DNA of 64,000 nt from Octopus bimaculoides (taxonomy: Eukaryota). The notes under the pieces are model-generated. The model had not been told where the DNA came from. It searched no databases and worked only from the letters and a program-made list of their open reading frames with translations. Location of the stretch: the NCBI RefSeq assembly GCF_001194135.2, contig NC_068983.1, positions 92,484,086-92,548,085 on the forward strand. The letters are read 5' to 3'. Shown piece after piece: positions 546 to 59,238 of the stretch (positions are counted from its first letter, which is position 1; each line of letters begins with the position of its first letter). The translations under genes and the position numbers were made by a program.

Positions 546-1760
546 GGAAAACATAATTAATAGACACTTTGAAGTGGTTGTATCTTGTAGTTATAAAATA
601 AAAAAATATTTCCTGGGACTGGAACAAAGTATTATGAAACCAAAAACAACATCATTAGCATCAAACCAAACAATAGAGAAACCTCTCAAATGATGTAAAC
701 AAAATGACCTTATGTACAGCATGGAATTTATTACAAGGAAATTTTAGCATAACAGGGTCTAAATATCAAGAATACCACCATAAACCATGTACATAATATT
801 GTGCTTATTATTATCTAATTGAACATACAAGGAAAATAATATTAGATGAATATACTGGCTCAACAGAAAAACTAACAACATCAACAAATGAATAGTAGCA
901 TCACTAACATATAACATGCCCCTTTAAGGAACAAATATTTGACAATGCAGCAGGTGACCCTGTGAAATACTTAACAATACCAAGGTAATCCCATTCCCCT
1001 CTTTCACCAGTGCCACTCAGAAATCCTGAACTGATAACATCTAAACAAATATTTGCTCCCTTATCCTTACAGCTTGTAAAATCATTAATGTAGCACCCTG
1101 TCAAAGTTGAGGTTAAATCAAAACATTCAATGCACCCCTCTCACAGCACCATGTACACTGAAATCAAAACAAGGCAAATCATTACCATCTTCTTTTCTTT
1201 CTCCTCTTACATTATTTATTCTTTCTCTCTTTTCTTTTTCCTATCCACACATGCCTTCTTGCACAAATCTAGAATACAAAGTAAAATTTCACTTATGTCC
1301 TCCCTCCCATACTGTTTCTATCTATCTATCTGTATGATAAGTCCAAATATTTACAAGAACCACACATAAATCTTACAGAACCTTCTGATTGGTGTATCCC
1401 TTAACATTCAGTACAACCAGAACACGAGAGTAATTTTTGGTTGAAGAAATGAAGACACATAATGATGGCTCCCCTTAAAATCCCAAGACATTACAAATCA
1501 TATTTGTAATGTCCTATGGATGGGGAATACAGCCATAAAAGACATGCTTTGTGGAAACATATGTAGCAATGCATTAAAATATTTATGAATTTCCATCCAA
1601 AAGTTCTCATTATTGCTATATTTATCCTACACTATAGTGGGACCAGACTTCTATAAAATTACTATCAAAGATGGGAATAATAAGTTGTAGCCAGGAAAAA
1701 TAGCATAGGAGCTTTTTATGAGCACACTCAAAAATATTTCCCATAAAATTAAAGGATATA

Positions 1761-1764
<4 letters not shown>

Positions 1765-1810
<46 letters not shown>
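1765..1810. repeat. (TA)n microsatellite, representative of many (TA)n, (CA)n, (CT)n and (ATC)n tracts
   Basis: Directly visible. Similar tracts near 8690-8755, 16040-16085, 35685-35750, 48325-48360 and 54155-54195. Confidence 0.95.
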
Positions 1811-1816
<6 letters not shown>

Positions 1817-2879
1817 TATTTTTGGGAAGTGTATCTAAAAGCACATGTAAAGCTATAAATGATATCATGTAAATAATAGGAAATAATGGAATGAAAAACC
1901 CTTCTGGATAAAAGAAGTTGAGGGCTGTCCATGTCAGCAATACACACAGACACACACACGCACACATATATAGGCACCTCAATCAAGTAAACTCTCCTCA
2001 TATTGCCCTCTTCCCACATTTCTCCAGCTGCAGCTCTACTTGATACTGCTATACTTGTTATCCTGAACCATTTCACTTGTTAGCCATTTCTTCATTTACT
2101 AATATTGTTCTCTACACCCACAGGTTCCATAGGCTATCTTAACCCCTCGAACATCAAAACATCTTCCCTCATGCACTATACTTCTCTCTTTCTCTCTCTC
2201 TCTCTCTCTCAGCCAACCCAAACATGTCATCTCTCTCCTCCTCACTGTCAACTGTATCATCAATTCTACCTAACAGCTAGCATCCTTCTAGCCTCCTTAA
2301 CCCTTTCATTACCAACCCAGCTGAAACTGGCTCTGGCTCTGAGTACAAATGTCTTGTTTGCATAAGTTTTGAATTAAAATCTTCCAGCAAACTTTAGTCA
2401 CAATTCATGTTCCTAACACTAGCTGAATGATAACTAAATTATTTTACTAAATTTTTTGTTATATTTAAAGTAATTGAAAGAAACACAGAGCACCTCAAAA
2501 TAAATACAGTAATGAAAGGGTTAAATCATGCATCCCCTCCCTCAACCTTTCCGAAGCTTTAAAGATGTTGCCTACCTCCCTCTCTCCCATTTCCCTTATC
2601 TCTTTCCTCCACCCATATACTCTTGCAAAGCCCCATTCACTGTTACACACCTCATACCTTGAGGAGCCACATGGGCACCTCATCACCACAACTTGTCTCT
2701 TCATTCTTACTTTCTTTCTCCTAAATGTGAGTAGCCATGTAGCTCCTCTACAACATTAACTTGAACCTGCTCACTTCCTACCTCTTCTCCCATACCTTAA
2801 CCCCCAGCTAACATAAGGACGCCTACCCCTACCTCCTTTGGAATTTGTTGATTTGCCAGCTGCATAGCAATTCAAAGGT

Positions 2880-14936: not shown

Positions 14937-15124
14937 TGGACTTGCTCAGCCTGTGCTCTGGGCTATCAACACTATTGGATTTGAGACTAATACCAAAATT
15001 CTTCAAGTGTAGAAAATCCTGGTTTCGCGATGGTAAAACTGTTGTGTGGGTGTAGTGAAGAGTAAACTAAAATCCAAATAATAAGAAAACAAAGAAATCC
15101 AAATAATAAGAAAACAAAAAATTC

Positions 15125-15761
15125 GGCACTGTCATGCTATTAGCTGTCAGAAGTGAAAGTGCTCACTGCTAGTGAAGTATCTGTCTGTCTGCCTGCATGC
15201 CTGTTGCTGTGTCCGTCTGTCTGTCTGCCTGCTGGTTTGAGTTGATACTTTGGCTTACTTACTTACTGATATCTATCTACTATCTATCTAGCTATCTATC
15301 AATCACTCGTCCACCTTATTAGAAAACACAAATTTAATATAAAAACATATTTCCTGAAATTGCAAATTATTTAAAATATAAAAATATAATTTTCAACAGA
15401 GAGAATTTATCAAAATAGAAAACAAATGAAGTTTGAAGTTTAAGAATAATAGGATCGACCACTCACGACTAGCTAGCGCGGACGCGCGACTGCGCGTTCT
15501 GGACCACTCTGCTTTAGTAGTACCCTTATACTCTGTGTGTTTTCAAACGCATGGATATAGGTGTCAAATTTGTTCCAATAACTTTCGAGTAATAGATAGA
15601 GAGAGAGACAGACAGACATATAGCTCGCTCCGGCCAGTCATGGTATTAGCTGTCAGTAGCCAAAGAATCGACAGGCCAGCAACAGGCATGCAGGCAGACA
15701 GACAGATACTTCACTAGCAGTGAGCACTTTCACTTCTGGCAGCTAATAGCATGACAGTGCC
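15125..15761. mobile_element. Young 637-bp non-autonomous DNA transposon (MITE), Merlin-like or Mutator-like
   Basis: 85-bp TIRs (15125-15209 and 15677-15761) with one mismatch, starting GGCAC. Perfect 8-bp TSD aaaaattc at 15117-15124 and 15762-15769. Confidence 0.9.
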
Positions 15762-15773
15762 AAAAATTCATTA

Positions 15774-15994
15774 CAATTGTTTCTGTACCAACTCTGCTTG
15801 CAACAAAAGTTTATACAAAAATTTGAAGTGAAAATTTATGTAATATTTGCAGTTTTAAACATTAGTGTGGCACCTTTAATGCAAGTCTGATGAAGTGCTA
15901 CTATAATGTCTAAAACTGCAAACATTATGTGAATTTTCACTTGGAAATTTTGCTTAAACTGGCATTGCAAGCAGAGTTGGTACAGAAACAATTG
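15774..15994. mobile_element. Tc1/mariner-type foldback MITE
   Basis: Termini caattgtttctgtaccaactctgcttgcaa and ttgcaagcagagttggtacagaaacaattg are perfectly inverted, and pairing continues imperfectly for ~95 bp. TA flanks at 15772-15773 and 15995-15996. Confidence 0.8.
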
Positions 15995-16064
15995 TAACAA
16001 ATCATTACAGATGTGTTAAAGGATTTCTTTGTCTTCTTATATATATATATATATATATATATAT

Positions 16065-20289: not shown

Positions 20290-21185
20290 GTTGGCACATT
20301 GTGTTCCGGTTTAGAGAAATAAAAGGCGTTGTTAACTTAGCAAAGACAAAAGTTGTGTTATTAAAAAAGCAGATAATTCTCTCCTTCTGTCAGGTAAATG
20401 GCCTTGCTCAATATGTAGGAAAGGAATGGGACGTAATTCTATTTGCTGCATCAAGTGTAAGCTTGGACACATAAGAGATGCAGTGGAATGTTAGATAGGT
20501 TAACAGATAAGGCTGCTTTCATGTGTGGCAGATGCACTAGAACAATAGGCACTAAGGGCACAAGGGACTTAAACTCTCTAAAATGCCCAGGAGGCTCTCT
20601 TGAGGTAATAGATAATTTGTGCTATTTAGGTGACCAAATTAGTAAAGGTGGTGGATGCTCTGAAAGTATTGCTTCTAGAATAAGAATAGGATGGAAGAAG
20701 TTTAGAGAGCAGCTACCTCTGTTGACAGCAAGAGAACTCTCTCTCAGAGTGAAAGGCAGATTGTATGATGCCTGTGTGAGAACAGCTATATTACATGGTA
20801 GTGAGACATGGGCTATGACTGCAGAGGACATGCACAAATGGAGAGGAATGAAGGTAGTATGCTCTGTTGGATTTGCAACATCAGTGTGCATGACTGACAA
20901 ACCACAACTGTGTTGAGAGAAAAATCAGGTATAAGAGTATTAAATGTGGCATGCAGGAGAGGAGAATGCAATGGTTTGAACATGTGATGCATATGTGTGA
21001 AGACAGCTGTATAAAGAAGTACCTGTCACTGAAAGTGGATCGTACCTGTGGAAGAGGGAAACCCAGGAAGACATGGGATGAAGTGATGAGAACTGATCTT
21101 AGGATGTTGAGGCTCATGGAGGAAAAGACAATGGACCAAGATGTTAGGTGATATGAGGTTCAAGAGAAGACCCGTTTGTGTCAGT
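20290..21185 (+). mobile_element. RTE LINE 3' fragment (PHD-containing family)
   Basis: NLAKTKVV...HKRCSG...FMCGRC...YLGDQISKGGGCSES...RVKGRLYDACVRTAILHGSETWA...GRGKPRKTWDEV. Confidence 0.85.
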
Positions 21186-29024: not shown

Positions 29025-29200
29025 CTTACTTGTTTCAGTCCTTTGACTGTGGCCATGCTGGAGTACTGCCTCTAGTCAAGCAAATCTACCCCAGGACTTA
29101 TTCTTTGTAAGCCTACTACTTATTCAATCAGTCTCTTTTGCTGAACTACTAAGTTATGGGGATGTAAATGCACCAACATCAGTTGTCAAGCGATGCTGGG
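29025..29200. mobile_element. SINE-like dispersed repeat (third family); second copy at ~47865-48040
   Basis: ttacttgtttcagtc.tttgactgtggcca.gctggag.actgc...ccccaggacttattct.tgtaagccta is shared between the two sites. Confidence 0.7.
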
Positions 29201-29302
29201 AGGACAAACACAGACACATCTACACACACACATACATATACAAGGCAAAGCAAACATCTCAAGTCGTATACAATATTATTATTAGAAAAAATTCAAAGTC
29301 TT

Positions 29303-29580
29303 TGTAGTGTGATGGAGGAAAAAGACAACAGAACAAAACAAAAGGGAGAAAGAGATACAGTGACCTTACCTGTTGATCATGGCGGGATGAGCGATCACTG
29401 ACTGGATCAAAACGTGACCTTTAACATGCGCCGTCTCTGCTTGAACTTCCCACACGTGCTCTGTGTCCACGCATACCCCTGTGGCCCTTCTGCCGGCCCC
29501 TGCAGTTTTCACTTCCATTTGCTTCATCTGCAATCCTCTCCACCAACACCACATAGCTCATCACAGCCCAGAACACCACA
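29303..29580 (-). repeat. 3' LTR of the compact Gypsy element
   Basis: 278 bp. I count 22 substitutions against 33403-33680 (~92% identity), about 19 of them transitions, many at CpG. Confidence 0.95.
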
Positions 29581-32500
29581 TGTAACACTGATCTACAGAT
29601 CATTCAACCGGCTTTCCCACTCTATCCTTGCTCCCGAACTCACACCTTAATTGGTTTCATAATCAGCCAACCAGGGAAGAGGGTGCCGCTCCCTCTGTGG
29701 TCACTGTGCAACCCCGGGACTGGCCTGAGTTCCTGGTACACTGCTGCTGGCTTCATCATCTTGCCTACTGCTGCTGTCTTCATTTTCTTGCCCACTGCTA
29801 CTGTCTTCATTTTCTTGCCCACTGCTACTGTCTTCATCTTCTTGCCCACTGCTGCTGGTTTGATCCTCTGAGGCATTGACAATCTTCAGCACATCCAAAA
29901 CATGGCCTGACATACCATCAACAGAGACGTTGTTCTTTGAATTGATGGAGGTTATTGTTCTTTTTCCCCATTGTGATATACACCGTGCATTTGGGGGTTT
30001 TACCCAAACTTCTTCTCTGATCTGCACAAAGGCGTGCTTTTCCCCTCCCCCGGGTTGCATTGATGCAGTACACGGAGGCCTCCACTTGTACCTGAATATT
30101 GCCCTGTGTGGCACCGACTCCTCAGCCTGTCCTGACCTAGGCGACATATTGTACCAAAATATGGCCTCGGTTGGTGAAATGTGGCCCCTCTCTGCCATGG
30201 TCTTGATGGTACGATGATGCCTTTCCACCACTCCATTTCCACTTGGCTGGTATGCCGCCCTGAAGAAGCGGCCAACCTGCCACCCATCAAGCATTTCTTT
30301 CAGCACCTCCGAGCGAAATGCAGTGCCATTATCCAGAAGCAGCTCATCCATGGGGCCTTGTTCCAGGAATATCTCATTCACGCGATTTCCTCTGCAGTCT
30401 CTGTCTTCATCTCCCTCCATATGGCCATCCGCCCAGGTCTGCAGTCAACTATTGAGAGGTACGTCCCCTGCCGGTAGTATGTTATGTCCACTGCCAGTCA
30501 TTTCCAGTTGTGGTCCACTAGAATACTTCCCGCCTCATGTACGCCCAAAGCAGGGTCAATAGACTGGCACCTGTCACAGCTGCTAACCACTTTCTGCACG
30601 CTCCGTCTTGTTACCTCGGAGTCGACTTTCCTGGCTAGGNNNNNNNNNNAACCACTTTCTGCACGCTCCGTCTTGTTACCTCGGAGTCGACTTTCCTGGC
30701 TAGGAACAATGTCCTGTCCACTCCCATGTGATGCATGGTATGCAGTCTCTTCAGCTCCAAGTAACTTAGACAGCATACTGCAGCCACAGCCTGCTCCACA
30801 TCCTCTGGCACCTACAATCAGGCTCGCTTTATCCTGGTCAGGACGTCTACCCTGTTCTTCTCAGAAGGCACAAAAATCACACTCAGCTTCAGATCGAACT
30901 CTGCGGTTAGCTCACCCAGTATCCCCAATCGACGCTTTACCAACATCTCTGCGACCCCTTTGGTTCGCACCCTACGCTCATTGGTGATGACTGCCGTTAC
31001 CCAACCAAGCACAGTGGCCGAATCGGTCCTAATTTCTATGGTGTGCAGCCCCCACTTTAAGGCCAGGTTCACCCCCTTCAACACGGCATCCAACTCTGCC
31101 ACATTGATATGGTTGCAGTCATCCATCTTCCTGAGCCAGGCTGTATCTTCCACCATGACACCTCCCATTTCCAAGATGATCCCTATTGTGATGGTACTGG
31201 CGTCACACCATACGATCTTGCTCTTTGATTTGGGAACATATCAACTGGCCCTCACTGGATCCTCTGCTCTCACTCTGACCAAGACTTCCTGCATCATGTC
31301 GGTCGTCTTCTCCCCCATTTTATCATTCCACTTCACTCCTTCGGCTCATCTCTTGATAAAGTTACATGCTGTCCGGAGCCATCCTGCAACCGAGTAGTGT
31401 CCCACCAGTTTCCCACACACCAAGAACAGTTCCCATCTACTCATGCTGGTGCCTAGTTCGCGGATCTCGTTCCCTCGCCGAAACACCAACGCACCGGCCT
31501 TGTCTCTCCATAGCTTGAGCCCCAGTGTAGCGCCTCCCTCCATCGCCTTTGGTGGCTTGGTGATCACTCCAGAACTCTTCAGGTGGCCTATGACCTCCAT
31601 TGCTGGCATTATGGTTTCATCCTCAAGGATGTCATCGATGTACGAATTGGTGGCCCTTTTTACTCTGTCCACCTTTCCCAGGATGGCCTTGAGAATTGTT
31701 GCAATAATCTTTGGCACCGAATTTAGCCCAAAACCCAGCCTGGTCAGACAGTATGTCCGGCCCTTATACCTGACAAGCTGATGCTTCCACAGTCTCTCAG
31801 CCACATGCACCTGCAGGTATGCCGACTTCAAATCGACGATCATGGCGGCCCCTGTCATTTGCCTCCACTCTCGCAAGGTGTCCCCACAGATATCTGTGGC
31901 CTCGCCGCCCCTATGACATGATATGTGGTCATTCAGCTCTCAGAAATCAAGCACTGGTTTGACCTTATGCTTTGTGGGCTGTGCCACCGCCATCAGTAGC
32001 AGGACTCCACTCTCTACTTCTTCCCAAGGGATCAAAATAATCCACTGCTCCCCCTCCCCCTCGAACTCGCTTCTGGCATCTCCTTTCAAAGTATGCTGAT
32101 AGCAGCCGACTCTCATTTTTTAACATCGGGGGCTCTCCCTTCCAGTGCCACTCCACTGTCCACCTCTGGCCATCGAAGACAGCAAGAAAGTCCTGGTCTT
32201 CAATGGTGTGTGCAGCATAGTTTTCTTCACGGTTCTCACCAATGCACGGTCTTGCCATACATGGTTTCCACACAACCCCGAATGTTACACCGGCCTCGTT
32301 GACAGTGACACCTCCTAAACGGGTGATTGCATCCATCCCCATCACCACGTCAATCTCATCCACCAAGTGGCCAACTACAATTGCTTGCAGCATCAGCTTT
32401 GTTCCCTGCACCACAATCTGCGCATCTGTAATGCCTTCACAGTGTACCTCTCTCCTCCGTCGACTGCCCTCACACTGCTTTCTCCACTCCACGTCTCTAA

Positions 32501-32784
32501 TACTCCTGGAGTCATCAGGGTCATCATACAGCCCGTGTCTACAAGGGCTCGCGACATCTTCCCCTCCACCAGAATGTGGACAACGGGGAGCAACAAACGC
32601 GCCTCTATTGATCCAAAGGGATGACCACTGGCGCAGTAGTCTCTCTTAGACTGTTTCCCTGCAGAAATTTGCTGGCTATATGTCCTGTTTCTCGACACCG
32701 ATAGCAAATGACTTCAGGCTTGGGTAACTTGCAGTCTTTCACCATGTGCGGGCCCTGACACTGGAAACACTGTCCTTTGAATGG

Positions 32785-33363
32785 TCACACACGTTCCTTG
32801 TTCGACCCCTCTCCGCTACTCCTTGCTCGGCCACTTTTCGCTATTGCAGTTGCCACTAACGGCATTGACCTGCAACACGAAATTAGCACACGAGCCCTAG
32901 TTATGATATCCACCATCACCATCGAGTTGATGTTTGGCAGCTTTTGCAACTTGACCGACATGTGGTCAGGAAAGCTAGTCACAAACGCTAACTTAACCAT
33001 CCGGTCCAGCGATTCTCCTTCGTACCCCGCCAGTTTAGCCAATCTCCTGGGTTCGTTGGCAAATACGTCAACCTGTTCACCAGTCCACGTTGCTTTCCCC
33101 AGGCGAGCGTAAGCTTCGAACATGCCTTCTGCAAAGGCCTCCATCAAGCAGATTTCTATTTTTTCCGCTCTAAGTTGGTCCCTCTCTTCCATTTCTAAGT
33201 ATAGCGCCAATGCTGAACCATCTAGGTACAGCGGTAGAAAACTCACTAAGTCATCTATCCCATGGAGCTTCGCAACCAACTTCATCTTCTTTAGCCAAGC
33301 GATTACATCCGTGTCACCGCAAAACGGTTTGATCATATTGTTCAAAATATGGACTATACTCAT
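32785..33363 (-). pseudogene. gag ORF of the compact Gypsy element (192 aa, stop just before the zinc knuckle)
   Basis: MIKPFCGDTDVIAWLKKMKLVAKL...FLPLYLDGSALALY. After the TGA the same frame gives CFQCQGPHMVKDC (C-x2-C-x3-H-x4-C). Confidence 0.8.
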
Positions 33364-33402
33364 AATTCTTTTTTTTGTTTTTTGTTATGGACCGAAATAG
33401 CT

Positions 33403-33689
33403 TGTAGTGTGATGGAAGAAAAAGACAACAGAACAAAGCAAAAGGGAGAAAGAGATAGAGCGACCTTACCTGTTGACTGTGGCGGGATGAGCAATCACTG
33501 ATTGGATCAAAACACGACCTTTAACATGCGCCATCTCTGCTCAAACTGCCCACACGTGCTCTGTGTCCATGCATGCCCTTGTGGCCCTTCTGCTGACCCC
33601 TGCAGTCTTCACTTCCATTTGCTTCATCTGCAATCCTCTCCACCAACACCACATAGCTCATCACAGCCCATAACACCACAAACACCACA
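33403..33689 (-). repeat. 5' LTR of the compact Gypsy element, with a 9-bp terminal duplication
   Basis: Matches 29303-29580. aacaccaca is repeated at 33672-33680 and 33681-33689 before the TSD. Confidence 0.95.
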
Positions 33690-34844
33690 GTCTTACAGCT
33701 GTTTCTGGGATATCCCCGAGTATGGGATATTCCGTCATCAGAGGCAAATAGGGAAAATGAAAATGGTGTATATTAATGAGATAATGACATAGAGAAAGGG
33801 AATAAAAGAATAAAAAGATGAAAAGAAAGAAGAAAAAAAGAAGCATAAAAGTTCATAGTTCAACTTTCTGAAGTTATAGAAATAAGAGCATAAATCTTTA
33901 GGTGCAATCCTGCATAGATCCATGAGTGTAAGTCCTTAGTTGCAATCCTGCCTAGATCCATGCGGGTTAAAATCCTGATAGAGTAGACATCCAGAGAAAA
34001 AAGATGCGAACATATCAATGTTCAATGAGAGAATGGTAGCAGAGGTTGCGATTAAGTGGTAAAAGGACAGAAAAGAAAAGAAATAGAAAGAGGAGTAGAT
34101 AGAGTGTGGGGGTGAATATAAGGATTGGCTATAGGATAAAGTATTGTGTATAGGTGTATGGTGTAGCTAAGAATATAAGAGAGAGGATGATAGGGTAAAA
34201 AAAATAGCAAAATGAAAGGAACTTAAAGAGGGTAGTAGGTATCTGTGGCAGTCTTAAAGTCTATAATTGTTGGGAAGGAAAATCTAGTAGTAAATGATTG
34301 TGTCCGTTCTGGCTAAGGTCAGTGGCTGTAGAGTTATTTTTAGCAAAGGGTTTATGGATGTGTAGGTAGTCAAGAATGGAGGAGCTAGTTGAATGTTAAA
34401 TTATTTATGAGTGGGAGTTAGAGTTAGGTATTAGGGGATTTATATAGGGGACTTATTGGTTTAAAGTTTAAAAATAAATTAAGGATAAATTAAAGAATTA
34501 ATATTTATCTCATAAAGTGATGAAGTAAGGTAGATAGAAGAGATGTAATATATAAGGTAGAAATAAGAGATATAGAGGGGTATGTGTTAATGATCATAGG
34601 GGTTTGTATGTGGGTACTATTCATGGGGGATGAAGTTACATTTAAATTTATGAAAGAATTTAAAAGTGCGGAAGAATTTGTGCTTACATCCAGTGAAGGC
34701 CTTGTTTTTATTAAGCAATTATGGTGAGTTGTAGGTTAAAATTTTGAGGTCTTTTTTTAAACAGAGTCCACAACTGGAGTGTTGGCCCTGATATGGGATA
34801 CCTGAATCTATTATAGCCCAGGAAAATATATAAATATATATATG

Positions 34845-35015
34845 ACGGGCTTCTTTCAGTTTCCGCCTACCAAATCCATTCACAAGGCTTTGGTCAGCCC
34901 AAGGCTATAGTAGAAGGCACTTGCTACTTCTACTATAGTAGAAGACAGGGTGCCATGCAGTGGAACCATGTGGTTGGTAAGCAAGCTAATTATCACACAG
35001 CCACTCCTGCGCCTA
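34845..35015 (-). mobile_element. tRNA-derived SINE head
   Basis: gggcttctttcagtttccgcctaccaaatccattcacaaggctttgg...accatgtggttggtaagcaagcta, same family as 48050-48212. Confidence 0.8.
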
Positions 35016-35681
35016 TTTTTAGAATAGTTGTTAAAGTTAGATACTTCCCTTTTCTTTTGCAGTTGAAAACCTAATACTAGAATAAACTCATAGCTACTAA
35101 ACATTCATAAACATTTTAAAGATGTAAATTGAAATGACTGATGGAAATTAAGATAGTAAAATAGAGACAATGAGGTTGTTAATCACTGGACAAAAGCCCT
35201 GGTGCTCAAGATGGAGTTGTTCCAAAGGAAACCTATACTGTCAAGTACAAACATTTAACATTTGCAATTCAAACATCTAAGATTACAAATATAATACACA
35301 TGTGTCCAGCACACTGACACACACCCAAAACTATAGAGTTTAGAGTTAACCAGGCAATAGATGTGCCAGAAAATACTTGTAAGTATCTTCTAGAACATTT
35401 ATTTAGTCCAGTGTTCTTCTGTTTCTGCCTACTCTCCACCCTAAGGATAATAGTCTACTATATAAATGAGAGTGTATGTGTGCTTAGCCCCAAAAGGCTC
35501 TGAAATGGTGCATCCTCAAGAGAAACAAATTTGATTTTTGAAATTTGCATCCTAAAGAGGTTATTCATAGATAATAATAAAAATATATATAATGTACTAT
35601 GAGAAATAACTCAACATTTAGATTGACAAATCTTCCACTCTCTAACTGTCACCAATAGGCACTCTCTCTCTTTTACACCTT

Positions 35682-35752
<71 letters not shown>

Positions 35753-41699: not shown

Positions 41700-42606
41700 T
41701 GTTTTCATTTCACCGCAACTCGTAACTGCTTCAGAACTGCCAAGTAAAATGTCTGGTTAACAATTCGACCAGGAGGAACAGATTCTTTGTGGACAATTCC
41801 TTTCGTCTCAATGAAACAAATCAGCATTGTCTTGACATTGGACTTTACTTGACACAGTTTTTTGAGGTGTGGTAACATTGAATGCTCCCATTGACTTGAT
41901 TGCTGCTTCATTTCCAGCTCATAGCCATAGCACCAGCTTTTGTCACCAGTGATGACCTTCAAAAAAAGATCCAAATCAACTTTCAACTGTTCTTTCAGTT
42001 CACAATATGAATTCAGTCATGACTACTTTTGATTTTCCATGAGCAAACAAGCCACAAATTTTGCTGCAACTCTTTTTCATTTGCAATTCTTCACTCAAAA
42101 TTCATTGACAGGAGCTCCAGGACACATCAGTCATATCTACAAGTTCATCAATTCTTTAGTGAGGGTCCTCCAAGATCAGTTCACAAATTTTTGTAATGTT
42201 TCATTTGTTCAAGAAGTTGACAGTTGCCTTGAATGAGGTTAGTCTTCAAGCGACAAGTGACCATTCCTAAAGCATGGAAACCACTTGTAAACTTGTGTTT
42301 TACTCAAGTATCCTTGTAAGTTGTTAGAAGCATGACAACTGTTTCAGTCACCATTTTCCTCAGCAGAAAACAGAATTTCACGGAAGCATGTTTTTCCTTC
42401 ATTTCAGTCATTGCAAAAATCAATGAACAGGGGAGAAGCACTGCAAAACAAAGATGCACCATGTGGCAGTATGACACCAATCAATGATGCTGGTTGGCAG
42501 ACAGATGCTTGAGGTTTACATCAAGTGACTTCTAGCCGTGGAAGCCTGAACTATCACAGGCTTGTCTCACAGAGAACGTTTCTGGTTACTTTTGGGTATC
42601 CCCTTG
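41700..42606 (-). mobile_element. 3'-truncated mariner (irritans-like subfamily)
   Basis: KVITGDKSWCYGYE.EMKQQSSQW...KSNVKTMLICF...VNQTFYLAVLKQLR. 5' TIR at ~42577-42606 followed by TA. Same family as 57941-59238. Confidence 0.88.
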
Positions 42607-43559: not shown

Positions 43560-45322
43560 TTGGAGAGAAATAATTATAGAGCAAGACAGGATGCCCCTGG
43601 GAGCTCCTCTATATTGATGACCTTGCGCTAATTGCTCAGTCACTATAAGAACTAGAGGAGAAGTTTCAGGCGTGGAAGCAAAGACTAGAATTGAAGGGCC
43701 TTAGAGTCAATCTAGCTAAAACCAAAGTTCTAATAAGTAGGAAGGTAGACAAAACACAGACCCCTTCAGGTAGATGGCCCTGCTCAATCTGTAGAAAAGG
43801 CGTAGGTAGAAACTCTACAAGATGTACTCAGTATAAGCTATGGACACATAAAGGGGTGCAGCAATATCAAAGGAAGGCTAACTAGCAAGATAGTTTTTAT
43901 ATGTGGCAGATGTTGAGGAGCAATGCACACTGAAAATGTGCAGAAAACAACTTTTGCCACATTCCAGGGAGAAAAAGTAGAAGTAGTTGATTGCTTCCGT
44001 TATTTAGGTGACCAAGTTAGTAGCAGGGGGAGGGTGCGCTGAAAATGTACTTGCTAGAATAAGAATAGCCTGGGAAAAGTTCAGAGAGCTCTTACCTCTG
44101 CTGGTGACAAAGGGCCTCTTGCTCAGAGTAAAAGGCAGACTGTATGACACATGTGTACAGCCATGCTTCATGGCAGTGAAGCATGGGCTGTAACTGCTGA
44201 ATACATGCGTGAGCTCGCAAGGAATGAAGCCAGTATGCTCCGATGGATGTGTAATGTCAGTGTGCATACTAGACAGAGTGTTAGTACCTTGAGAGAAACG
44301 TTAGACCTAAGAAGCATCAGTTGTGGTGTGCAAGGGAGACGATTGTGCTGGTATGGTCTTGTGGCAAGAATGGATGAGGATAGCTGTGTGAAAAAGTGTC
44401 ACACTCTAGCAGTTGAGGGAACCTGTGGAAGAGGTAGACCCAGGAAGACCTGGGATGATGTGGTGAAGCACGACCTTCGAACATTAGGCCTCACCGAGGC
44501 AATGACTTGTGACTGAGACCTTTGGAAATATGCTGTGCGTGAAAAAGACCCGGCAAGCCAAGTGGGACCATAATCCGAGGCCTCCGCCAAGGATGTAGCC
44601 AGCCCACTTACGCGTACCTTTCCTTCATTGGACACTAAACTCTGCTTGCGAAGACCTGTTGAGGCAAGTGAAATCGAAATCGAACTAAATTCGACNNNNN
44701 NNNNNNNNNNNNNNNNNNNNNNNNNNNNNNNNNNNNNNNNNNNNNNNNNNNNNNNNNNNNNNNNNNNNNNNNNNNNNNNNNNNNNNNNNNNNNNNNNNNN
44801 NNNNNNNNNNNNNNNNNNNNNNNNNNNNNNNNNNNNNNNNNNNNNNNNNNNNNNNNNNNNNNNNNNNNNNNNNNNNNNNNNNNNNNNNNNNNNNNNNNNN
44901 NNNNNNNNNNNNNNNNNNNNNNNNNNNNNNNNNNNNNNNNNNNNNNNNNNNNNNNNNNNNNNNNNNNNNNNNNNNNNNNNNNNNNNNNNNNNNNNNNNNN
45001 TGTATCGGTGGCATGTGAAAAAACATTCGAGCGAGGTTGTTGCGAGTGCTGCTGGACTGGCTCCTGTGCAGGTGGCACATAAAAAACACCATTTTGAGCG
45101 TGGCCATTGCCAGTACCGCCTGACTGGCCCTCGTGCCGGTGGCACATGAAATCACCCACTACACTCTCAGAGTGTTTGGCATTAGGAAGGGCATCCAGCT
45201 GTAGAAACTCTGCCAGATCAGATTGGAGCCTGGTGCAGCCATCTGGTTCGCCAGTCCTCAGTCAAATCGTGCAACCCATGCTAGCATGGAAAGCGGACGT
45301 TAAACGATGATGGTGATGATGA
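43560..45322 (+). mobile_element. Young RTE LINE, RT C-terminus to tail, with an assembly gap in the 3' UTR
   Basis: PWELLYIDDL...LRVNLAKTKV...WPCSICRKGVGRNS...GSEAWA...RGRPRKTWDDVVKHDLRTLGLTEAM, gap 44696-45000, tail ending cgttaaacgatgatgg. Confidence 0.92.
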
Positions 45323-45629: not shown

Positions 45630-46850
45630 CACAGAGTGGGTCATAGCCCAACTAATTTGGAAAAAAGTTAGTCTAGATGAAATGCAGTTTAGTTTTGTGC
45701 TAAGGAGAAGCATCACAGATGCTGTATTCCTGGTAAGGCAGCCACAAGAGAAGTACCCAGCCAAAATAAACCGCTGTACTTGGCTTCTGTTGACATGGAG
45801 AAAGCCTTCAGTAGGATCCCCTACACCCTTATCTGGTGATCAATGCAGAAACTAGGGTGTTGTACAAGCCATGTACAAGGATGCTGTCAGTAAGATGAGG
45901 GTTGGCAACAAGTATAGTAATGAATTCAGGGTACAAGTAAGAGCTCACCAAGGATCAGTCCTCAGGCCCCTCCTGTTCATTATAGCTCTCCAGGCAGTAA
46001 CAGAGGAATTTAAGTCAAACTGCCCCTGGGAGCTCCTCTATACTGATGATATTGTTCTTACAGGTGAATCACTACCAGAACTAGAGAAGAAATTTCAGGT
46101 GTGGAAACAAAGTCTAGAAATCAAAGGTCTAGACTGAAAGAGTTACCAAAGTTTTAGTAGGTAGGAAAGTGAACAAACCACAAATCCCTTCAGGTAGATG
46201 GCCCTGCTCGATATCTAGAAAAGGTGTAGGTAGAACCTCTATAATATGTTCCCAGTGCAAGTTATGGACACATAAGAGGTGCAGGAATATTAGAGAAAGG
46301 TTAACAGGAAAATTAGTCTTTGTGTGTGGCAGATGTACAGGTATGATAAGCACTAGAAATGTACAGAAAATAGACCCCATCAAATGCCAGGAGGGATACC
46401 TAGAAGTAGTTGATAGCTTCCATTATGTAAGTGACCCATTCAACAGTAGAGGTGGAAGCTCTGAGAGCGTATCTGCTAGAATAAGAATAGACTGGGCAAA
46501 GTTCAGAGAGCATCTACCTTAGAGTAAAAACCAGGTTGCATGATGCCTGTGTGTGAACAGCCATGCTACACAGCAGTGAAACATAGGTTGTGACTGCAGA
46601 GGACATGTGAAGGCTTGAAAGAAATGAAGCTAGTATATTTTGCTGGATGTGCAATGTCAGTGTGCAGGTACAACAGAGTGTAAGCACCTTGAGAGAAAAA
46701 ATTGGCATAAGAGGCATCAGATGTGGTGTGCAAGAGAGCTGGACAAGTACAGCTGTGTAAAGATGTGTCGATCTCTGTAGAAAAAGAAGACATGGGATGA
46801 GGTGGTGAAGCACGATCTTCGATAGTTAGGTCTCTCAGAAGCAATGTCAA
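45630..46850 (+). mobile_element. Older RTE LINE copy covering most of the RT domain
   Basis: DEMQFSFV...TDAVFLVRQ...VDMEKAF...AMYKDAVSKMRVGN...HQGSVLRPLLFII...PWELLYTDD...WPCSISRKGVG...CSQCKLWTHKRC...CGRC. Confidence 0.9.
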
Positions 46851-48049
46851 GTGATATATCTATACTACAATAAGAGCCGCATCCATCTGTCCGTCACATT
46901 TTTCTTCAGTAAAAGAGAAAGAGTGAGAGAGAGTGAGTGAGTGGTGAGTGAAAGGAAGAGAGGAAAAATGTTTATCTGTATATTCAGAGTAGACTGATAC
47001 ATACAAAGAAAAATAGGTACATAGATTTAAAAAAAGCAGATAGATAGACACATACACACATTGTTAAATTAAAAGCAAGAGAAAGGAGGGACGCAGAGGA
47101 AGTGAGAGAGACAGTAGATACATAGATAAAATGAAAAGAAAAGTTGGTACATAGATACATACTCAGATTGCAGTATTCTAACTGTGGGCGACATTGGGGA
47201 CTCTTTTCTCTTATCTGTTGCTCTTTCAGCAATTGATACTCCAACAAAACATCTATGCAGTTGCCCGACTTGTGACCAATAGCAACCAAATCTCCTTCAA
47301 ATGATACCCTCCTGTGTTAGTTTTATCTCAGGCAACATTGTTGGATTTTAATAAGACAGCAGGGTAATGCCATTAGTAGGATAGGAAGGAAGATGAGAGA
47401 AAATAAAATGAAATAATTATTCAAAATACAATAAAGGTAGAAGTACAAAGAGGTTTAATTTTCTGTAATAGGTTGATGGGTAATAAAAATTTTTGAGGTT
47501 CACAGATATGAAAGCTTTAAAGGTTCATGGATATCAAAGTCTGAAAGTTAAAGGAAGTGTGGAAGGTAATTCTATTTAAATTTATTACCTGTATGTTTTA
47601 ATGAATATTTGGTCATTAAAATCCATACTAGAATAATGGATATGAAGCAGAATATATAGTGGTGTTTCAAAATAATTATGTGCACTGAGATTTGCAGATT
47701 AATTATTTAAAACAAACAGTTTAAAGATGAGTTTCAATAAGTACACATTCTATTTCCATTTTATTAATTTTTGTCACGGATTTATCCTGTGTACAAAATA
47801 TGTAGATGGATAGATGGACAGATAGATAGATAAATTTGTGTACATATATGCAAAATTGGTTACTCTTTACTCTTACTCTTTTACTTGTTTCAGTCATTTG
47901 ACTGTGGCCAGGCTGGAGCACTGCTTTTAGCCGAGCAAATCGACCCCAGGACTTATTCTATGTAAGCCTAGTACTTATTCTATCGGTCTCTTTTTGCCGA
48001 ACCGCTAAGTTACAGGGACGTAAACACACCAGCATCGGTGACATATATA

Positions 48050-48212
48050 CGACAGGCTTCTTTCAGTTTCCGTCTACCAAATCCACTCACAAGGCTTTGG
48101 TCGGCCCGAGACTATAGTAGAAGACACTTGCCCAAGGTGCCACGCAGTGGGACTGAACCTGGAACCATGTGGTTCGTAAGCAAGCTACTTACCACACAGC
48201 CACTCCTTCGCC
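48050..48212 (-). mobile_element. Young tRNA-derived SINE head
   Basis: Reverse complement ggagtggctgtgtggtaagtagcttgcttacgaaccacatggttccaggttcagtcccactgcgtggcaccttgggcaagtgtcttc, with CpGs intact. Confidence 0.85.
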
Positions 48213-48315
48213 TATGGTTATTGATACTTTCAATTACTTTTGGGTATACGTGAGAAAAAATAGAACGTTAAACTACACATCGTTTAACTGGTGCCTTAGT
48301 ATGTGTGTGTGTATG

Positions 48316-48591: not shown

Positions 48592-48906
48592 GAAGGCACA
48601 TGGCTTAGTGGTTAGGGTATTCGACTCATAATCATAAGGTCATGAGTTCAATTCCCTGCGACACATTGTGTCCTTCAGCAAGACACTTTATTTCATGTTG
48701 CTCCAGTTCATTCAGCAGGCAAAACTGAGTAGTACCTGTATTTCCTTGTTACATTCTATGTCACGCTGAATCTCTCTGAGAATTACGTTAAGGGTAGGTG
48801 TGTCCGTGGAGTGATCAGCCACTTGCATGTTAATTTCATGAGCAAGCTGTTCCATTGACCAGATTAACTGGAACCCTCGTCATCATAACTGACAGAATGC
48901 CAGTTC
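48592..48906 (+). mobile_element. tRNA-derived SINE (second family), near full length
   Basis: A box tggcttagtgg, B box gagttcaattcc, then the family core cttcagcaagacactttatttcatgttgctccag. Confidence 0.8.
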
Positions 48907-48920
48907 TATATATATGTATA

Positions 48921-49744
48921 TGTAGTGGACCTTGCATGCATGAAGTGGATTTGATCCACCATAGCCAAATTTAAATTAACACTGCGACAGAACCTTTCCC
49001 ATGGTGGAACAATAGTTTTTCTCTGACAGCAGTTTAATATTTTCCAGATGCCTTTAGCTAGGCCGAAACAATGTCTTCACCACTTGACCCTTTCTAACCT
49101 CTTCTACATCACCAAAATCTAGAATAGAGATAACAAGACCACCAACTAAATCTATTGTTCTCAATAATATATCTATCCTTCTAGATAGTTATAAAAACAA
49201 GAGACCCCAAGCAAAACGTCAGTAGTCACTTGGCGACGACAGAACGAAGCAGCTAATGACAACTCAATTAGTTAGTGAATGGTCATCTACAGATATAGTC
49301 ACAAGCGGGCAGTCACCTAAAGACAAAACGACCAGAAGGAGAAAAGAAGATTACAACCAGCCAACTATGAGACACAACGTCCCACGCTATACAACTTTGA
49401 CTAGCTCATTTGCTTTTCTCGGTAACCTTACCCTATCTTTATCTGTTTACTTCTACAAGATCATGTACACACACATACAGGCTGAAATTAACTTTCTTTA
49501 CCTTGCATGCTTCACAAACTGTGTTATACTATTACACTAACCTACCTGTCGTGGTATGGCATTTATTAAAGTAACGGTAAATAAATATTTCTTTATAACA
49601 TTATCGTTAAAATTGGTAACCTCCGACTTTAACAACTACCATTACAATTGGTGACCCTCGGCAACAATTAAAACTTATAACCGTTACAATTGGTAGACCC
49701 GAACAAGAGAATTACTGCAATAGCAACCAATCTCAACCGTTACA
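48921..49744 (+). mobile_element. Putative solo LTR (824 bp) with a terminal array of LTR-end plus PBS-like units
   Basis: Starts TGTAGTGG and ends CCGTTACA (6/8 inverted match), tata on both flanks. TATA-like ttataaaa at ~49189 and AATAAA at 49580-49585. Three tggt(g/a)acc..cg motifs at 49614, 49649 and 49691. Confidence 0.7.
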
Positions 49745-50289
49745 TATATATATGTATAATATATGCATGTATATATATATGCGTGTGCGGGGGTGTATAT
49801 GTGTATGTCTGAATATGTATGCATGTATGTGTATGTATGTCTTTGTATATATATGTGTGTGTATGCATGTATGTATATTAGTAAGTCTGTGTATGTTTAA
49901 TATCTATATGCATGATAGATAATGGCAATGGGGTGCCTATGTGGCACACGATTGTATGGGAAAGAGAATGAGAGTTGGGAGACAGACTGCCAAAATGGGT
50001 AGAGTTGGAGGGTGGATGAGGAAGGAACCTTGAATTAGGGGAGACAGAGGGGTGCAGAAGAGAATGGTGTATCAAGTAACAGGTGTGATAAATATGATAC
50101 AGTTGTCAGTGGGGGAAGACGAGAGAGGGAAAACATGTGTGATAGTCTACAGGAGTTGGGAGGGCAGGAGAAAAAGCATGGAAGTGAGCGGATGAGTCAA
50201 TATAATCTGGATGTAAAGCATAATATTTAGCTCTTCCAGTTTTGCTGAGAAGAGAAAGTCTCTTTTTAGAACTGCATTTCACCAGAAAT

Positions 50290-57940: not shown

Positions 57941-59238
57941 CGAGTGAGTAACCAAAACAAACTGGAATTTTGCAATATTATTTTATTCACTTAGTTTTAC
58001 ATGTTTACACTTTTATCGCCTTCAAAGTATTCTTCATTTGACTTGATTTCCACTGTTTGAAGCAGTCCTGGAACTCTTATGAAGTGATACCTTTTAACGC
58101 TTCTGTTGTTTTTTTGTTCACCTCTTCCACATCTGCAAAACATTTTTCTTTAGAACTTTTTCATTCAGGGGAACAAAAAATATCACGGAGAGCAAGATCA
58201 GGTGAATAGGGAGGTTGGGCAAGTGGAGTCATGCCATTTTTGGTCAAAATCTGTCTCACACTTAAAGCAGTGTGCACAGGTGCATTGTCATGATGAAACC
58301 ACCACTCTCCACTTTGTCACAGATTGGGGCGTTTTGTCTCACTGCATCTTGAAACCGCTTCAGAACTGCCAAGTAAAATGTCTGGTTAACAGTTTGACCA
58401 GGAGCAACAAATTCTGTGTGGACAATTTTTTTCACATCAATAAAACAAAACAGCTTTATCATAACATTGGACTTCACTGAATACACTTTTCCTAGGCGTG
58501 GTAACATTGAATGCTCCCATTGACTTGATTGCTGCTTCATTTCTGGATCATAGCTGTAGCACCAGCTTTTGTCACCAGTGATGACCTTCAAAGAAAATTC
58601 CAGATTAACTTACAGCTGTTCTTTCAGTTCACAACATAACTTCAGTCATGACTGCTTTTGATATTCCATGAGCAAGTGAGACACAAATTTTGCTGCAACT
58701 CTTTTCATTTGCAATTCCTTGCTCAAAAATCGTTGGCAGGAGCTCCAGGATAGACCAATCATATCAACAAGTTTGTCAGTTGTTCAGCATTGGCCCTTCA
58801 ACATCCATTCATGAATTTTCATCATGTTTTCATTCGTCTGAGAGGTTGACAGTCACCTTGAATGAGATTGGTCCTCAAGCAACAAGGAACCATTCCTAAA
58901 GCATAGAAACCACTTGTAAAATTGTGTTTTGCTCATGGTAACATCCTTGTAAGCTGTTTGAAGCATGACAACTATTTCAGCTGCCATTTTCCCCAGCAGA
59001 AAATAGAATTTCATGGAAGCATGTTGTTCCTTCATTTCAGCAATCACAAAGATTGACGAATAGGGGATAAGCACTGTAAAACAAAGATACACCATGTGGT
59101 AGTATGACTTCACACGATACTACTGGCTGGCAGACTGATGCCTGAGGGTGACATCAAGTGACTTCTAGCCTTGGAGCCTGAACTACAATGAGCTTGTCCC
59201 ATAGAAAATGTTTCCAGTTACTTTTGGGTACCTCCTCA
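57941..59238 (-). mobile_element. Full-length (1298 bp) mariner (irritans-like), inactive
   Basis: TA-flanked imperfect TIRs. MKEQHASMKFYFLLGKMAAE...WFLCFRNG; VITGDKSWCYSYDPEMKQQSSQW; C-terminal EYFEGD. Multiple stops and frameshifts. Confidence 0.92.

Follow-up and report, generated by a model that had tools for sequence, protein, structure and literature searches.

An LTR-retrotransposon carries its primer-binding site (PBS) once, outside the LTR, where it marks the outer limit of U5. An 824-bp insert in the genome of Octopus bimaculoides has the form of an LTR, and the question raised by this locus is how three sequences resembling the junction between an LTR end and a PBS came to lie inside it, and what they might have done there. 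The window referred to below is the whole 64-kb stretch of DNA that was analysed; it has a G+C content of 38%, contains assembly gaps and many microsatellites, and gave no hits to tRNA genes or Rfam families. Relatives of the insert were met with in one locus of Octopus sinensis, CM016866.1:37715764-37736540 (referred to here as L020), which comes from octopus DNA sampled around retroelement proteins. The comparison rests on three copies (the window copy, copy A and array B), two of them old. Coordinates are collected in Table 1.

Table 1. Features of the insert, its flanks and its relatives at L020 of O. sinensis
Feature	Position	Strand	Description
LTR-like insert, 824 bp	48921..49744	+	TGTAGTGG...CCGTTACA; orphan copy; 5' boundary matched by L020 copy A
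Left 14-nt flanking direct repeat	48907..48920	.	TATATATATGTATA; adjoins start of insert
Right 14-nt flanking direct repeat	49745..49758	.	TATATATATGTATA; adjoins end of insert
U3-like part	48921..49196	+	Shares homology with copy A of O. sinensis (L020 6503->6237); ends at conserved TATA box
AATAAA polyadenylation-type signal	49580..49585	+	Motif only; ~20 nt 5' of unit 1
Unit 1	49602..49627	+	Terminus-like TCGTTAAA (49604) + AT + PBS-like TGGTAACCTCCGAC; aligns with L020 unit Bi; repeat family D5
Unit 2	49637..49662	+	CCATTACA (49639) + AT + TGGTGACCCTCGGC; 19/20 identity to L020 unit Bii
Spacer 2	49663..49678	+	Alignable to L020 spacer Bii-Biii
Unit 3	49679..49704	+	CCGTTACA (49681) + AT + TGGTAGACCCGAAC; aligns with L020 unit Biii
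Spacer 3	49705..49734	+	First 15 nt are AAGAGAATTACTGCA; 14/15 match in L020 8279->8265, downstream of array B
Terminal unit 4	49735..49744	+	AACCGTTACA; forms the 3' end as integrated; adjoins right flanking repeat
Copy A	L020 6503 to ~5700	-	Homology to insert from first base TGTAGTGG through TATA box
Array B	L020 8490 to ~8231	-	Three good units (Bi, Bii, Biii); spacings 88 and 39 nt
Unit Bi	array B		CAATTACA-AT-TGGTAACCCCAAC
Unit Bii	array B		CCATTACA-AC-TGGTGACCAATGAC
Unit Biii	array B		CTGTTACA-T-TGGTCACCCTGTC

Layout of the array

The original prediction placed four copies of a terminal motif at the end of the insert (tcgttaaa at 49604, ccattaca at 49639, ccgttaca at 49681 and again at 49737), with at plus a PBS-like word after each of the first three (tggtaacctccgac at 49614-49627, tggtgaccctcggc at 49649-49662 and tggtagacccgaac at 49691-49704), with gaps of 11, 18 and 32 nt between the units. 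When these were re-read, the words and coordinates were found to be exact to the base and the gaps to be as claimed. The general form of the array is CCGTTACA-AT-TGGT(R)ACC..., which occurs three times and is followed by a fourth CCGTTACA that ends the 824-bp insert. The repeated core is ~24-26 nt long and unit-to-unit spacings are 35, 42 and 56 nt. Identical copies of the 10-mer AACCGTTACA start at 49679 and, at the extreme end of the insert, at 49735, and in the window copy no PBS-like word follows the terminus of this last unit.

A scan of the 64-kb window for the 14-mer CCGTTACAATTGGT with up to two mismatches returned only the three unit sites, and when the insert was shuffled 1000 times by dinucleotides, no shuffle had three such copies within 100 nt. 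The array is genuine and not a product of chance. Among the window units the 14-mer core is 79-93% identical and the spacers cannot be aligned; the similarity of the spacers within this copy is no better than that of shuffles, in keeping with the earlier claim that they are mutually unrelated, and the 16 nt 5' of each unit are no more alike than shuffled sequence. Tandem Repeats Finder reported no array at 49600-49744, and the single period and whole-length likeness that characterise a minisatellite are absent from the window array.

Other readings of the same stretch were tried and rejected. Homology 5' of the 8-mer, which would make units 1 and 2 abut, was not significant, and a search for older, decayed units deeper in the putative LTR (48921-49600) gave no peaks above shuffles. 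Taken as hairpins or dimerisation loops (a GTTAC/GTAAC stem with CAATTG at the centre), the units were no more stable than shuffled sequence. The opposite strand was considered as a PPT followed by the start of U3, but the 20 nt before each TGTAACGG are just 35-60% purine and end in ACCAAT.

A separate observation concerns GTAACGGT at 49571-49578, just 5' of AATAAA, which is perfectly complementary to the ACCGTTAC of units 3 and 4 (49680-49687 and 49736-49743). In the predicted RNA fold of 49540-49760 it pairs with the terminal copy (z = -2.6).

Form and ends of the insert

The plus strand of the insert has a single TATA box (TATAAAA at 49190), which is conserved in copy A. Given this box and the AATAAA at 49580, the array would be U5 if the insert is an LTR. 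The termini are TG...CA, with a short terminal inverted repeat (TGTAGTGG against CCGTTACA, 6/8 inverted), and are set by the 14-nt direct repeat that abuts them. This exact 14-mer occurs three times in the window, twice next to the insert and once at 35718. It consists of a 4-bp TATA inside a perfect 14-bp repeat, and either the whole is the target-site duplication or the TATA part is. Integrase-made target duplications are 4-6 bp long. Identical 14-mers are expected to arise from a short duplication at ~0.1-0.2% of window positions, and the same mimicry is expected at 2-5% of positions within TA/TG low-complexity DNA. The perfect 14-bp flanking duplication does not look as if it were of integrase origin. 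At copy A no flank repeat of at least 6 nt was found.

Searches of the 64-kb window found no second copy of the 824-bp insert, no partner LTR and no gag/pol beside it, and a window search with the joined flanks found no paralogous empty site. Neither the 94-aa ORF in the insert nor a six-frame concatenate of the whole insert had homologues among 5.8 billion proteins. The insert had been described as a solo LTR, and this status is one of form: the TG...CA ends, the order of TATA box and AATAAA and the 5' boundary agree with it, whereas the perfect 14-bp duplication is unlike that of an integrase.

An alternative that we regard as unlikely, though as the likeliest of the rivals, is that the insert is a non-autonomous repeat of ~0.8 kb and no LTR at all, inserted by a LINE-type (target-primed) or other non-integrase route. 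The core would then be a 3' cis motif (e.g. a recognition site for a protein or RT) that resembles an LTR end plus tRNA-Trp PBS by chance. Long target duplications of variable length are a trait of LINE-dependent retroposons, and the 14-bp repeat at the window copy, a 14-mer otherwise nearly absent from the window, fits this pattern; moreover neither gag/pol nor a partner LTR was seen near any of the three copies. However, the same flanking duplication defines the TG...CA ends exactly, and the TATA box is conserved between copies. There is neither a poly(A) nor a simple-repeat tail at either end of the insert, and within 48921-49744 no tRNA or other Rfam match and no pol III (tRNA, 5S, 7SL) head was found. 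Against a Penelope-type pseudo-LTR stands a permissive Rfam scan of 48600-50000 (E up to 10), which found no hammerhead.

Relatives in Octopus sinensis

Copy A matches the insert with 76% identity over 275 nt (E 7e-47), and the match continues to 49280 at 71%. The flanks of the two copies are unrelated. As the homology begins at TGTAGTGG, copy A confirms the left boundary at 48921 and shows the insert to be a dispersed repeat. The 3' half of copy A is diverged and holds three unit-like words (CCGCTACAATCGTTAACTGCCGAC, CTGTTACAAT... and GCTACAAAATTGGTAACACTCC); these three peaks compare with 0.43 expected from shuffles (P ~0.02), and the units are weak and degenerate, with HMM E values above 1.

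Array B was more informative about the units themselves. Window array and array B align one to one, in the same unit order and with spacer 2 included, and 49630-49694 of the window matches L020 8411->8351 at 73% over 66 nt. The start of spacer 3 recurs 3' of array B and is followed there by a terminus-like word; in array B a match to the 3' boundary of the insert can be placed tentatively at CCATTACG or TCGTCACA. The expectation that other copies would share both ends of the insert thus held for 48921, which is identical in copy A, and for 49744 only tentatively, through array B. A scan of 183 kb of DNA, from octopus and other sources, with the motif TTA[CA]A-N1-2-TGGT-N1-2-ACC gave six matches against 0.2 expected; three are the units of the window and the other three those of array B. 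Between the two arrays the cores are ~92% identical (46/50) against ~55% for the alignable spacer, the other spacers having large indels; this high conservation of the cores is partly one of ascertainment, because array B was located through the core motif.

Upstream of array B no LTR body was recognisable, and no retroelement genes or domains, gag/pol or partner LTR were found near copy A or array B. Two ways of joining these sequences were rejected, namely that array B closes a complete but diverged LTR and that A and B are the two LTRs of one element: body homology is missing, and no retroelement domains lie between A and B. No copy of the insert was found in the further loci from cephalopods and other animals (L018, L019 and L021-L029), and pattern scans of viral contigs and JGI metagenomes gave unrelated tandem repeats or chance matches and no relatives.

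PBS-like words and tRNA-Trp

The reference for these comparisons is the word TGGTGACCCCGAC, taken here as complementary to the last 13 nt of metazoan tRNA-Trp. The octopus DNA sampled yielded no tRNA gene. In retroviruses the LTR end and the PBS are arranged as CA + 2 nt + TGG, the dinucleotide being removed by integrase. All three window units have the PBS-like word exactly 2 nt after CA, and in the six good units of the window and array B the TGG stands one or two nt after CA. The six lie within 1-3 edits of TGGTGACCCCGAC and none is perfect. Without gaps, the window words do not match it at three mismatches or fewer: unit 1 agrees at 12/13 positions with one inserted base, unit 2 has nine contiguous matches and unit 3 needs one indel. 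Unit Bi agrees at 11/13 positions ungapped, both mismatches being G-to-A and one of them at a CpG, and unit Biii at 10/13. The unit consensus TGGTRACCCYGAC appears compatible with tRNA-Trp. The idea that the spacers record read-through into the tRNA was rejected, there being no complementarity beyond 13 nt.

As regards the claim that a PBS-like word is the complement of the tRNA-Trp 3' end, all six words come within 1-3 edits of that complement, but the match is imperfect in every unit and ends at 13 nt. The companion claim, that tRNA-Trp primes Gypsy-type elements, is supported by the literature, a tRNA-Trp PBS being conserved in the CsRn1 clade (CsRn1, PwRn1 and AgCR) of Ty3/gypsy elements (PMC2582038). 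In Drosophila Gypsy a PBS of 11 nt is functional (PMC1635307).

These words bear on the suggestion that the insert is no LTR. That all the matches are imperfect is what a fortuitous likeness would give. On the other side, CA + 1-2 nt + TGG recurs in six units, the ancestral word would suit a primer known from retroelements, and the units as hairpins are no more stable than shuffles.

A further possibility, less probable again, is that the array has the origin proposed below but that its inner units have been under selection, either as back-up primer sites and integrase ends or as decoys for PBS-directed repression by 3'-tRNA fragments or zinc-finger repressors. Hosts are known to target PBS regions (PMC8931336). 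Selection would suit the contrast in conservation between cores and spacers, seen both between the window and array B and among the window units. The first of these comparisons carries the ascertainment bias already described, however; the cores of copy A are kept no better than the remainder of that copy, and the indels in the PBS parts of the inner units would weaken pairing with the tRNA.

Age of the copy and of the array

The observed/expected ratio of CpG is 0.68 for the insert, which ranks it among the highest 2.4% of window blocks, and 1.31 for the array, against a window median of 0.16. Six of the seven consensus CpG positions are kept in the window array and none of the seven in array B. 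The window copy is fairly young in relative terms. Within its array, units differ from one another at 27-35% of non-CpG positions, and since CpG has been retained all the while, the divergence of the units must predate the insertion of this copy. Since O. sinensis has these units and spacers at another locus, the array is an inherited feature of the family, and judging by these alignments the common ancestor of the window and O. sinensis copies already had it. The copies share these units and spacers even though spacer alignment reaches just ~55% or fails, so the array is both old and stable. This weakens the earlier suggestion that its repeat-spacer layout could record successive events; the array does not have the character of a fast-changing record.

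A simple tandem duplication in the window copy after insertion, followed by decay, is scarcely credible: although the units stand head to tail within 145 nt and units 1 and 2 differ mostly by transitions, the spacers are unequal in length and unalignable, CpG survives against a strongly depleted background, and the same ordered units with homologous spacers in L020, along with the unit-like words of the third copy, exclude a duplication private to the window copy, which would have refuted the original prediction.

A possible origin of the array

The explanation that we prefer, tentatively and as somewhat short of an even chance, is that the insert is the orphan LTR of an uncharacterised octopus LTR-retrotransposon, whose U5 contains three internal junctions of terminus + 2 nt + ~13-nt PBS and whose fourth terminus is the integrated end, with priming at the outermost site. 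The LTR nature of the insert, the function of the words as tRNA-Trp primer sites and the use of the outer site are all things that we infer. Searches of the window and of the surroundings of the L020 copies gave no full-length element, paired LTRs, gag/pol or PPT of this family, which weighs against the explanation. In the replication of LTR elements, U5 is the stretch between R and whichever primer site is in use. If the leader of the element had the form R - [terminus+PBS] x n, a tRNA priming at the outermost site would lead to a minus-strand strong-stop DNA that takes in the inner sites, and the plus-strand strong-stop DNA would have the outer PBS at its end. Once the second jump had been made, each LTR would end at the last copy of the terminus and hold the inner junctions. 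An LTR extended in this way would, on this proposal, stay a substrate for integrase because each module brings its own CA end. The initial duplication of the module might, for instance, have come about by a template switch as the synthesis of plus-strand strong-stop DNA drew to its close.

Several predictions follow from an orphan LTR with outer-site priming. In 5' LTRs of the family a PBS should stand after the last CCGTTACA, paired LTRs should surround a gag-pol interior, and there may be LTR length variants that end at unit boundaries. A wider version, which we think speculative and rather improbable, is that an octopod lineage keeps several tRNA-Trp sites in its leader, each after a working integrase end. 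The choice of site would then give rise to LTR length variants, to stepwise growth of the LTR and to past ends that could still be read, and the inner sites might be back-ups, or decoys against PBS-directed silencing.

Comparison with known systems

In its TG...CA ends, its length of a few hundred bp, its TATA box and AATAAA and its terminus + 2 nt + TGG, the insert resembles solo LTRs of Ty3/gypsy elements such as CsRn1. Elements of the CsRn1 type, however, have one PBS, outside the LTR, whereas the insert has three terminus plus PBS junctions inside. The CsRn1 clade is further marked by a Gag with a CHCC motif and a gypsy-type pol. Their solo LTRs are flanked by duplications of 4-5 bp, in contrast to the 14 bp found here, and the octopus element is known from its LTR-like repeat alone.

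More than one tRNA-binding sequence has been described in two natural elements. Ty3 has its second tRNA-binding site in U3. In Drosophila Gypsy the genomic RNA has such a site close to its 3' end, in addition to the 5' PBS, and the PBS of Ty3 is likewise bipartite (PMC1635307). Like the array, these bipartite PBSs involve a sequence outside the usual place beside the 5' LTR. The second site of Ty3 and Gypsy, however, pairs with the anticodon and T stems and sits towards the 3' end of the RNA, with no copy of the LTR terminus attached; in the octopus array all copies mimic a 3'-end PBS plus terminus, and they lie in what would be U5.

Engineered retroviral vectors with two PBSs (Voronin and Pathak 2004, J Virol 78:5402, cited in PMC3902901) resemble the proposed leader in having several PBSs in one leader. 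In these vectors initiation reportedly occurred at either site, and use of the downstream site is said to have carried the upstream PBS into the LTRs. They differ from the octopus units in being laboratory constructs and in having no duplicated integrase end before each PBS. Tandem repeats and minisatellites of LTRs (e.g. the enhancer repeats of U3) share with the array a short motif repeated inside an LTR, but their units are uniform, head to tail and usually in U3, whereas the octopus array has a core of 24-26 nt, unlike spacers and a position at the extreme end of U5. None of the closest known systems has repeated terminus plus PBS junctions inside U5, and a literature search found no natural LTR with multiple PBSs, in agreement with the original prediction, which knew of no described family of this architecture.

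If the proposed explanation is true, the octopus family would be a natural case of movable LTR boundaries, which are otherwise known from engineered two-PBS vectors alone. It would also offer a route to the study of primer-site choice, of the recognition of integrase ends and possibly of the evasion of PBS-directed silencing in a wild element. LTR finders that assume a single PBS would set the boundaries of such elements wrongly in cephalopod genomes. Should the 14-bp duplication prove typical of the family, this would point instead to a different kind of mobile element that merely resembles an LTR.

Other repeats in the window and at L020

The window has several repeat families in common with loci of O. 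sinensis, at 83-94% identity, and a retroelement ORF at 31346-31876 (minus strand) has its best named relatives in O. sinensis (80-88% identity) and Argonauta hians. A frameshifted LTR retroelement lies at 29302-33680 on the minus strand, with LTRs of 279 bp that are 92% identical (TGTGGTG...CACTACA) and a 5-bp target duplication, AAGAC. Its domains are in the order protease, RT, DUF7047, RNase H and integrase zinc finger, and copies in O. sinensis are 83-89% identical to it. The 5' LTR of this element is followed by AGCTATTTC..., and since this sequence lacks TGG and is conserved in three copies (window, L018 and L019), it suggests a non-standard primer site. A repeat of ~335 bp, intact at 47881-48215, is found again at 29026-29183 and 34836-35016, where it is split by 5.6 kb that include the retroelement; the intact copy is thus a paralogous 'empty site', the split one having received a nested insertion.

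At L020 a C2H2 zinc-finger gene (1058-2395, minus strand), a single exon of 445 aa with 13 fingers, lies 3.3 kb downstream of copy A. A tRNA-like SINE head is present both in the window (48600-48671, plus strand) and at L020 (8501-8573, plus strand), the two being 75% alike; its Rfam tRNA match is sub-threshold at 18 bits. In the window it lies 250 nt 5' of the insert and at L020 it directly abuts array B. Membership of the array structure was considered for it and rejected, as its position and orientation differ in the window, which marks it as an independent SINE.

The remaining repeats of the window are of various kinds. Inverted repeats of 88 nt at 15122-15209 and 15677-15764 are 97.7% identical and are followed by a self-complementary stretch of 229 nt (79%) at 15771-15997; the structures of 15122-15997 are possibly a hairpin-forming or MITE-like element. 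An ORF at 46169-46522 (plus strand) has a PHD-finger match at the Pfam threshold (E 4e-5) and sits in a repeat of which the window has three copies (20390-21089, 43766-44466 and 46190-46738), at 67-73% identity. Lastly, 41710-42604 and 58339-59236 form an unclassified direct repeat of ~900 bp with 83% identity.
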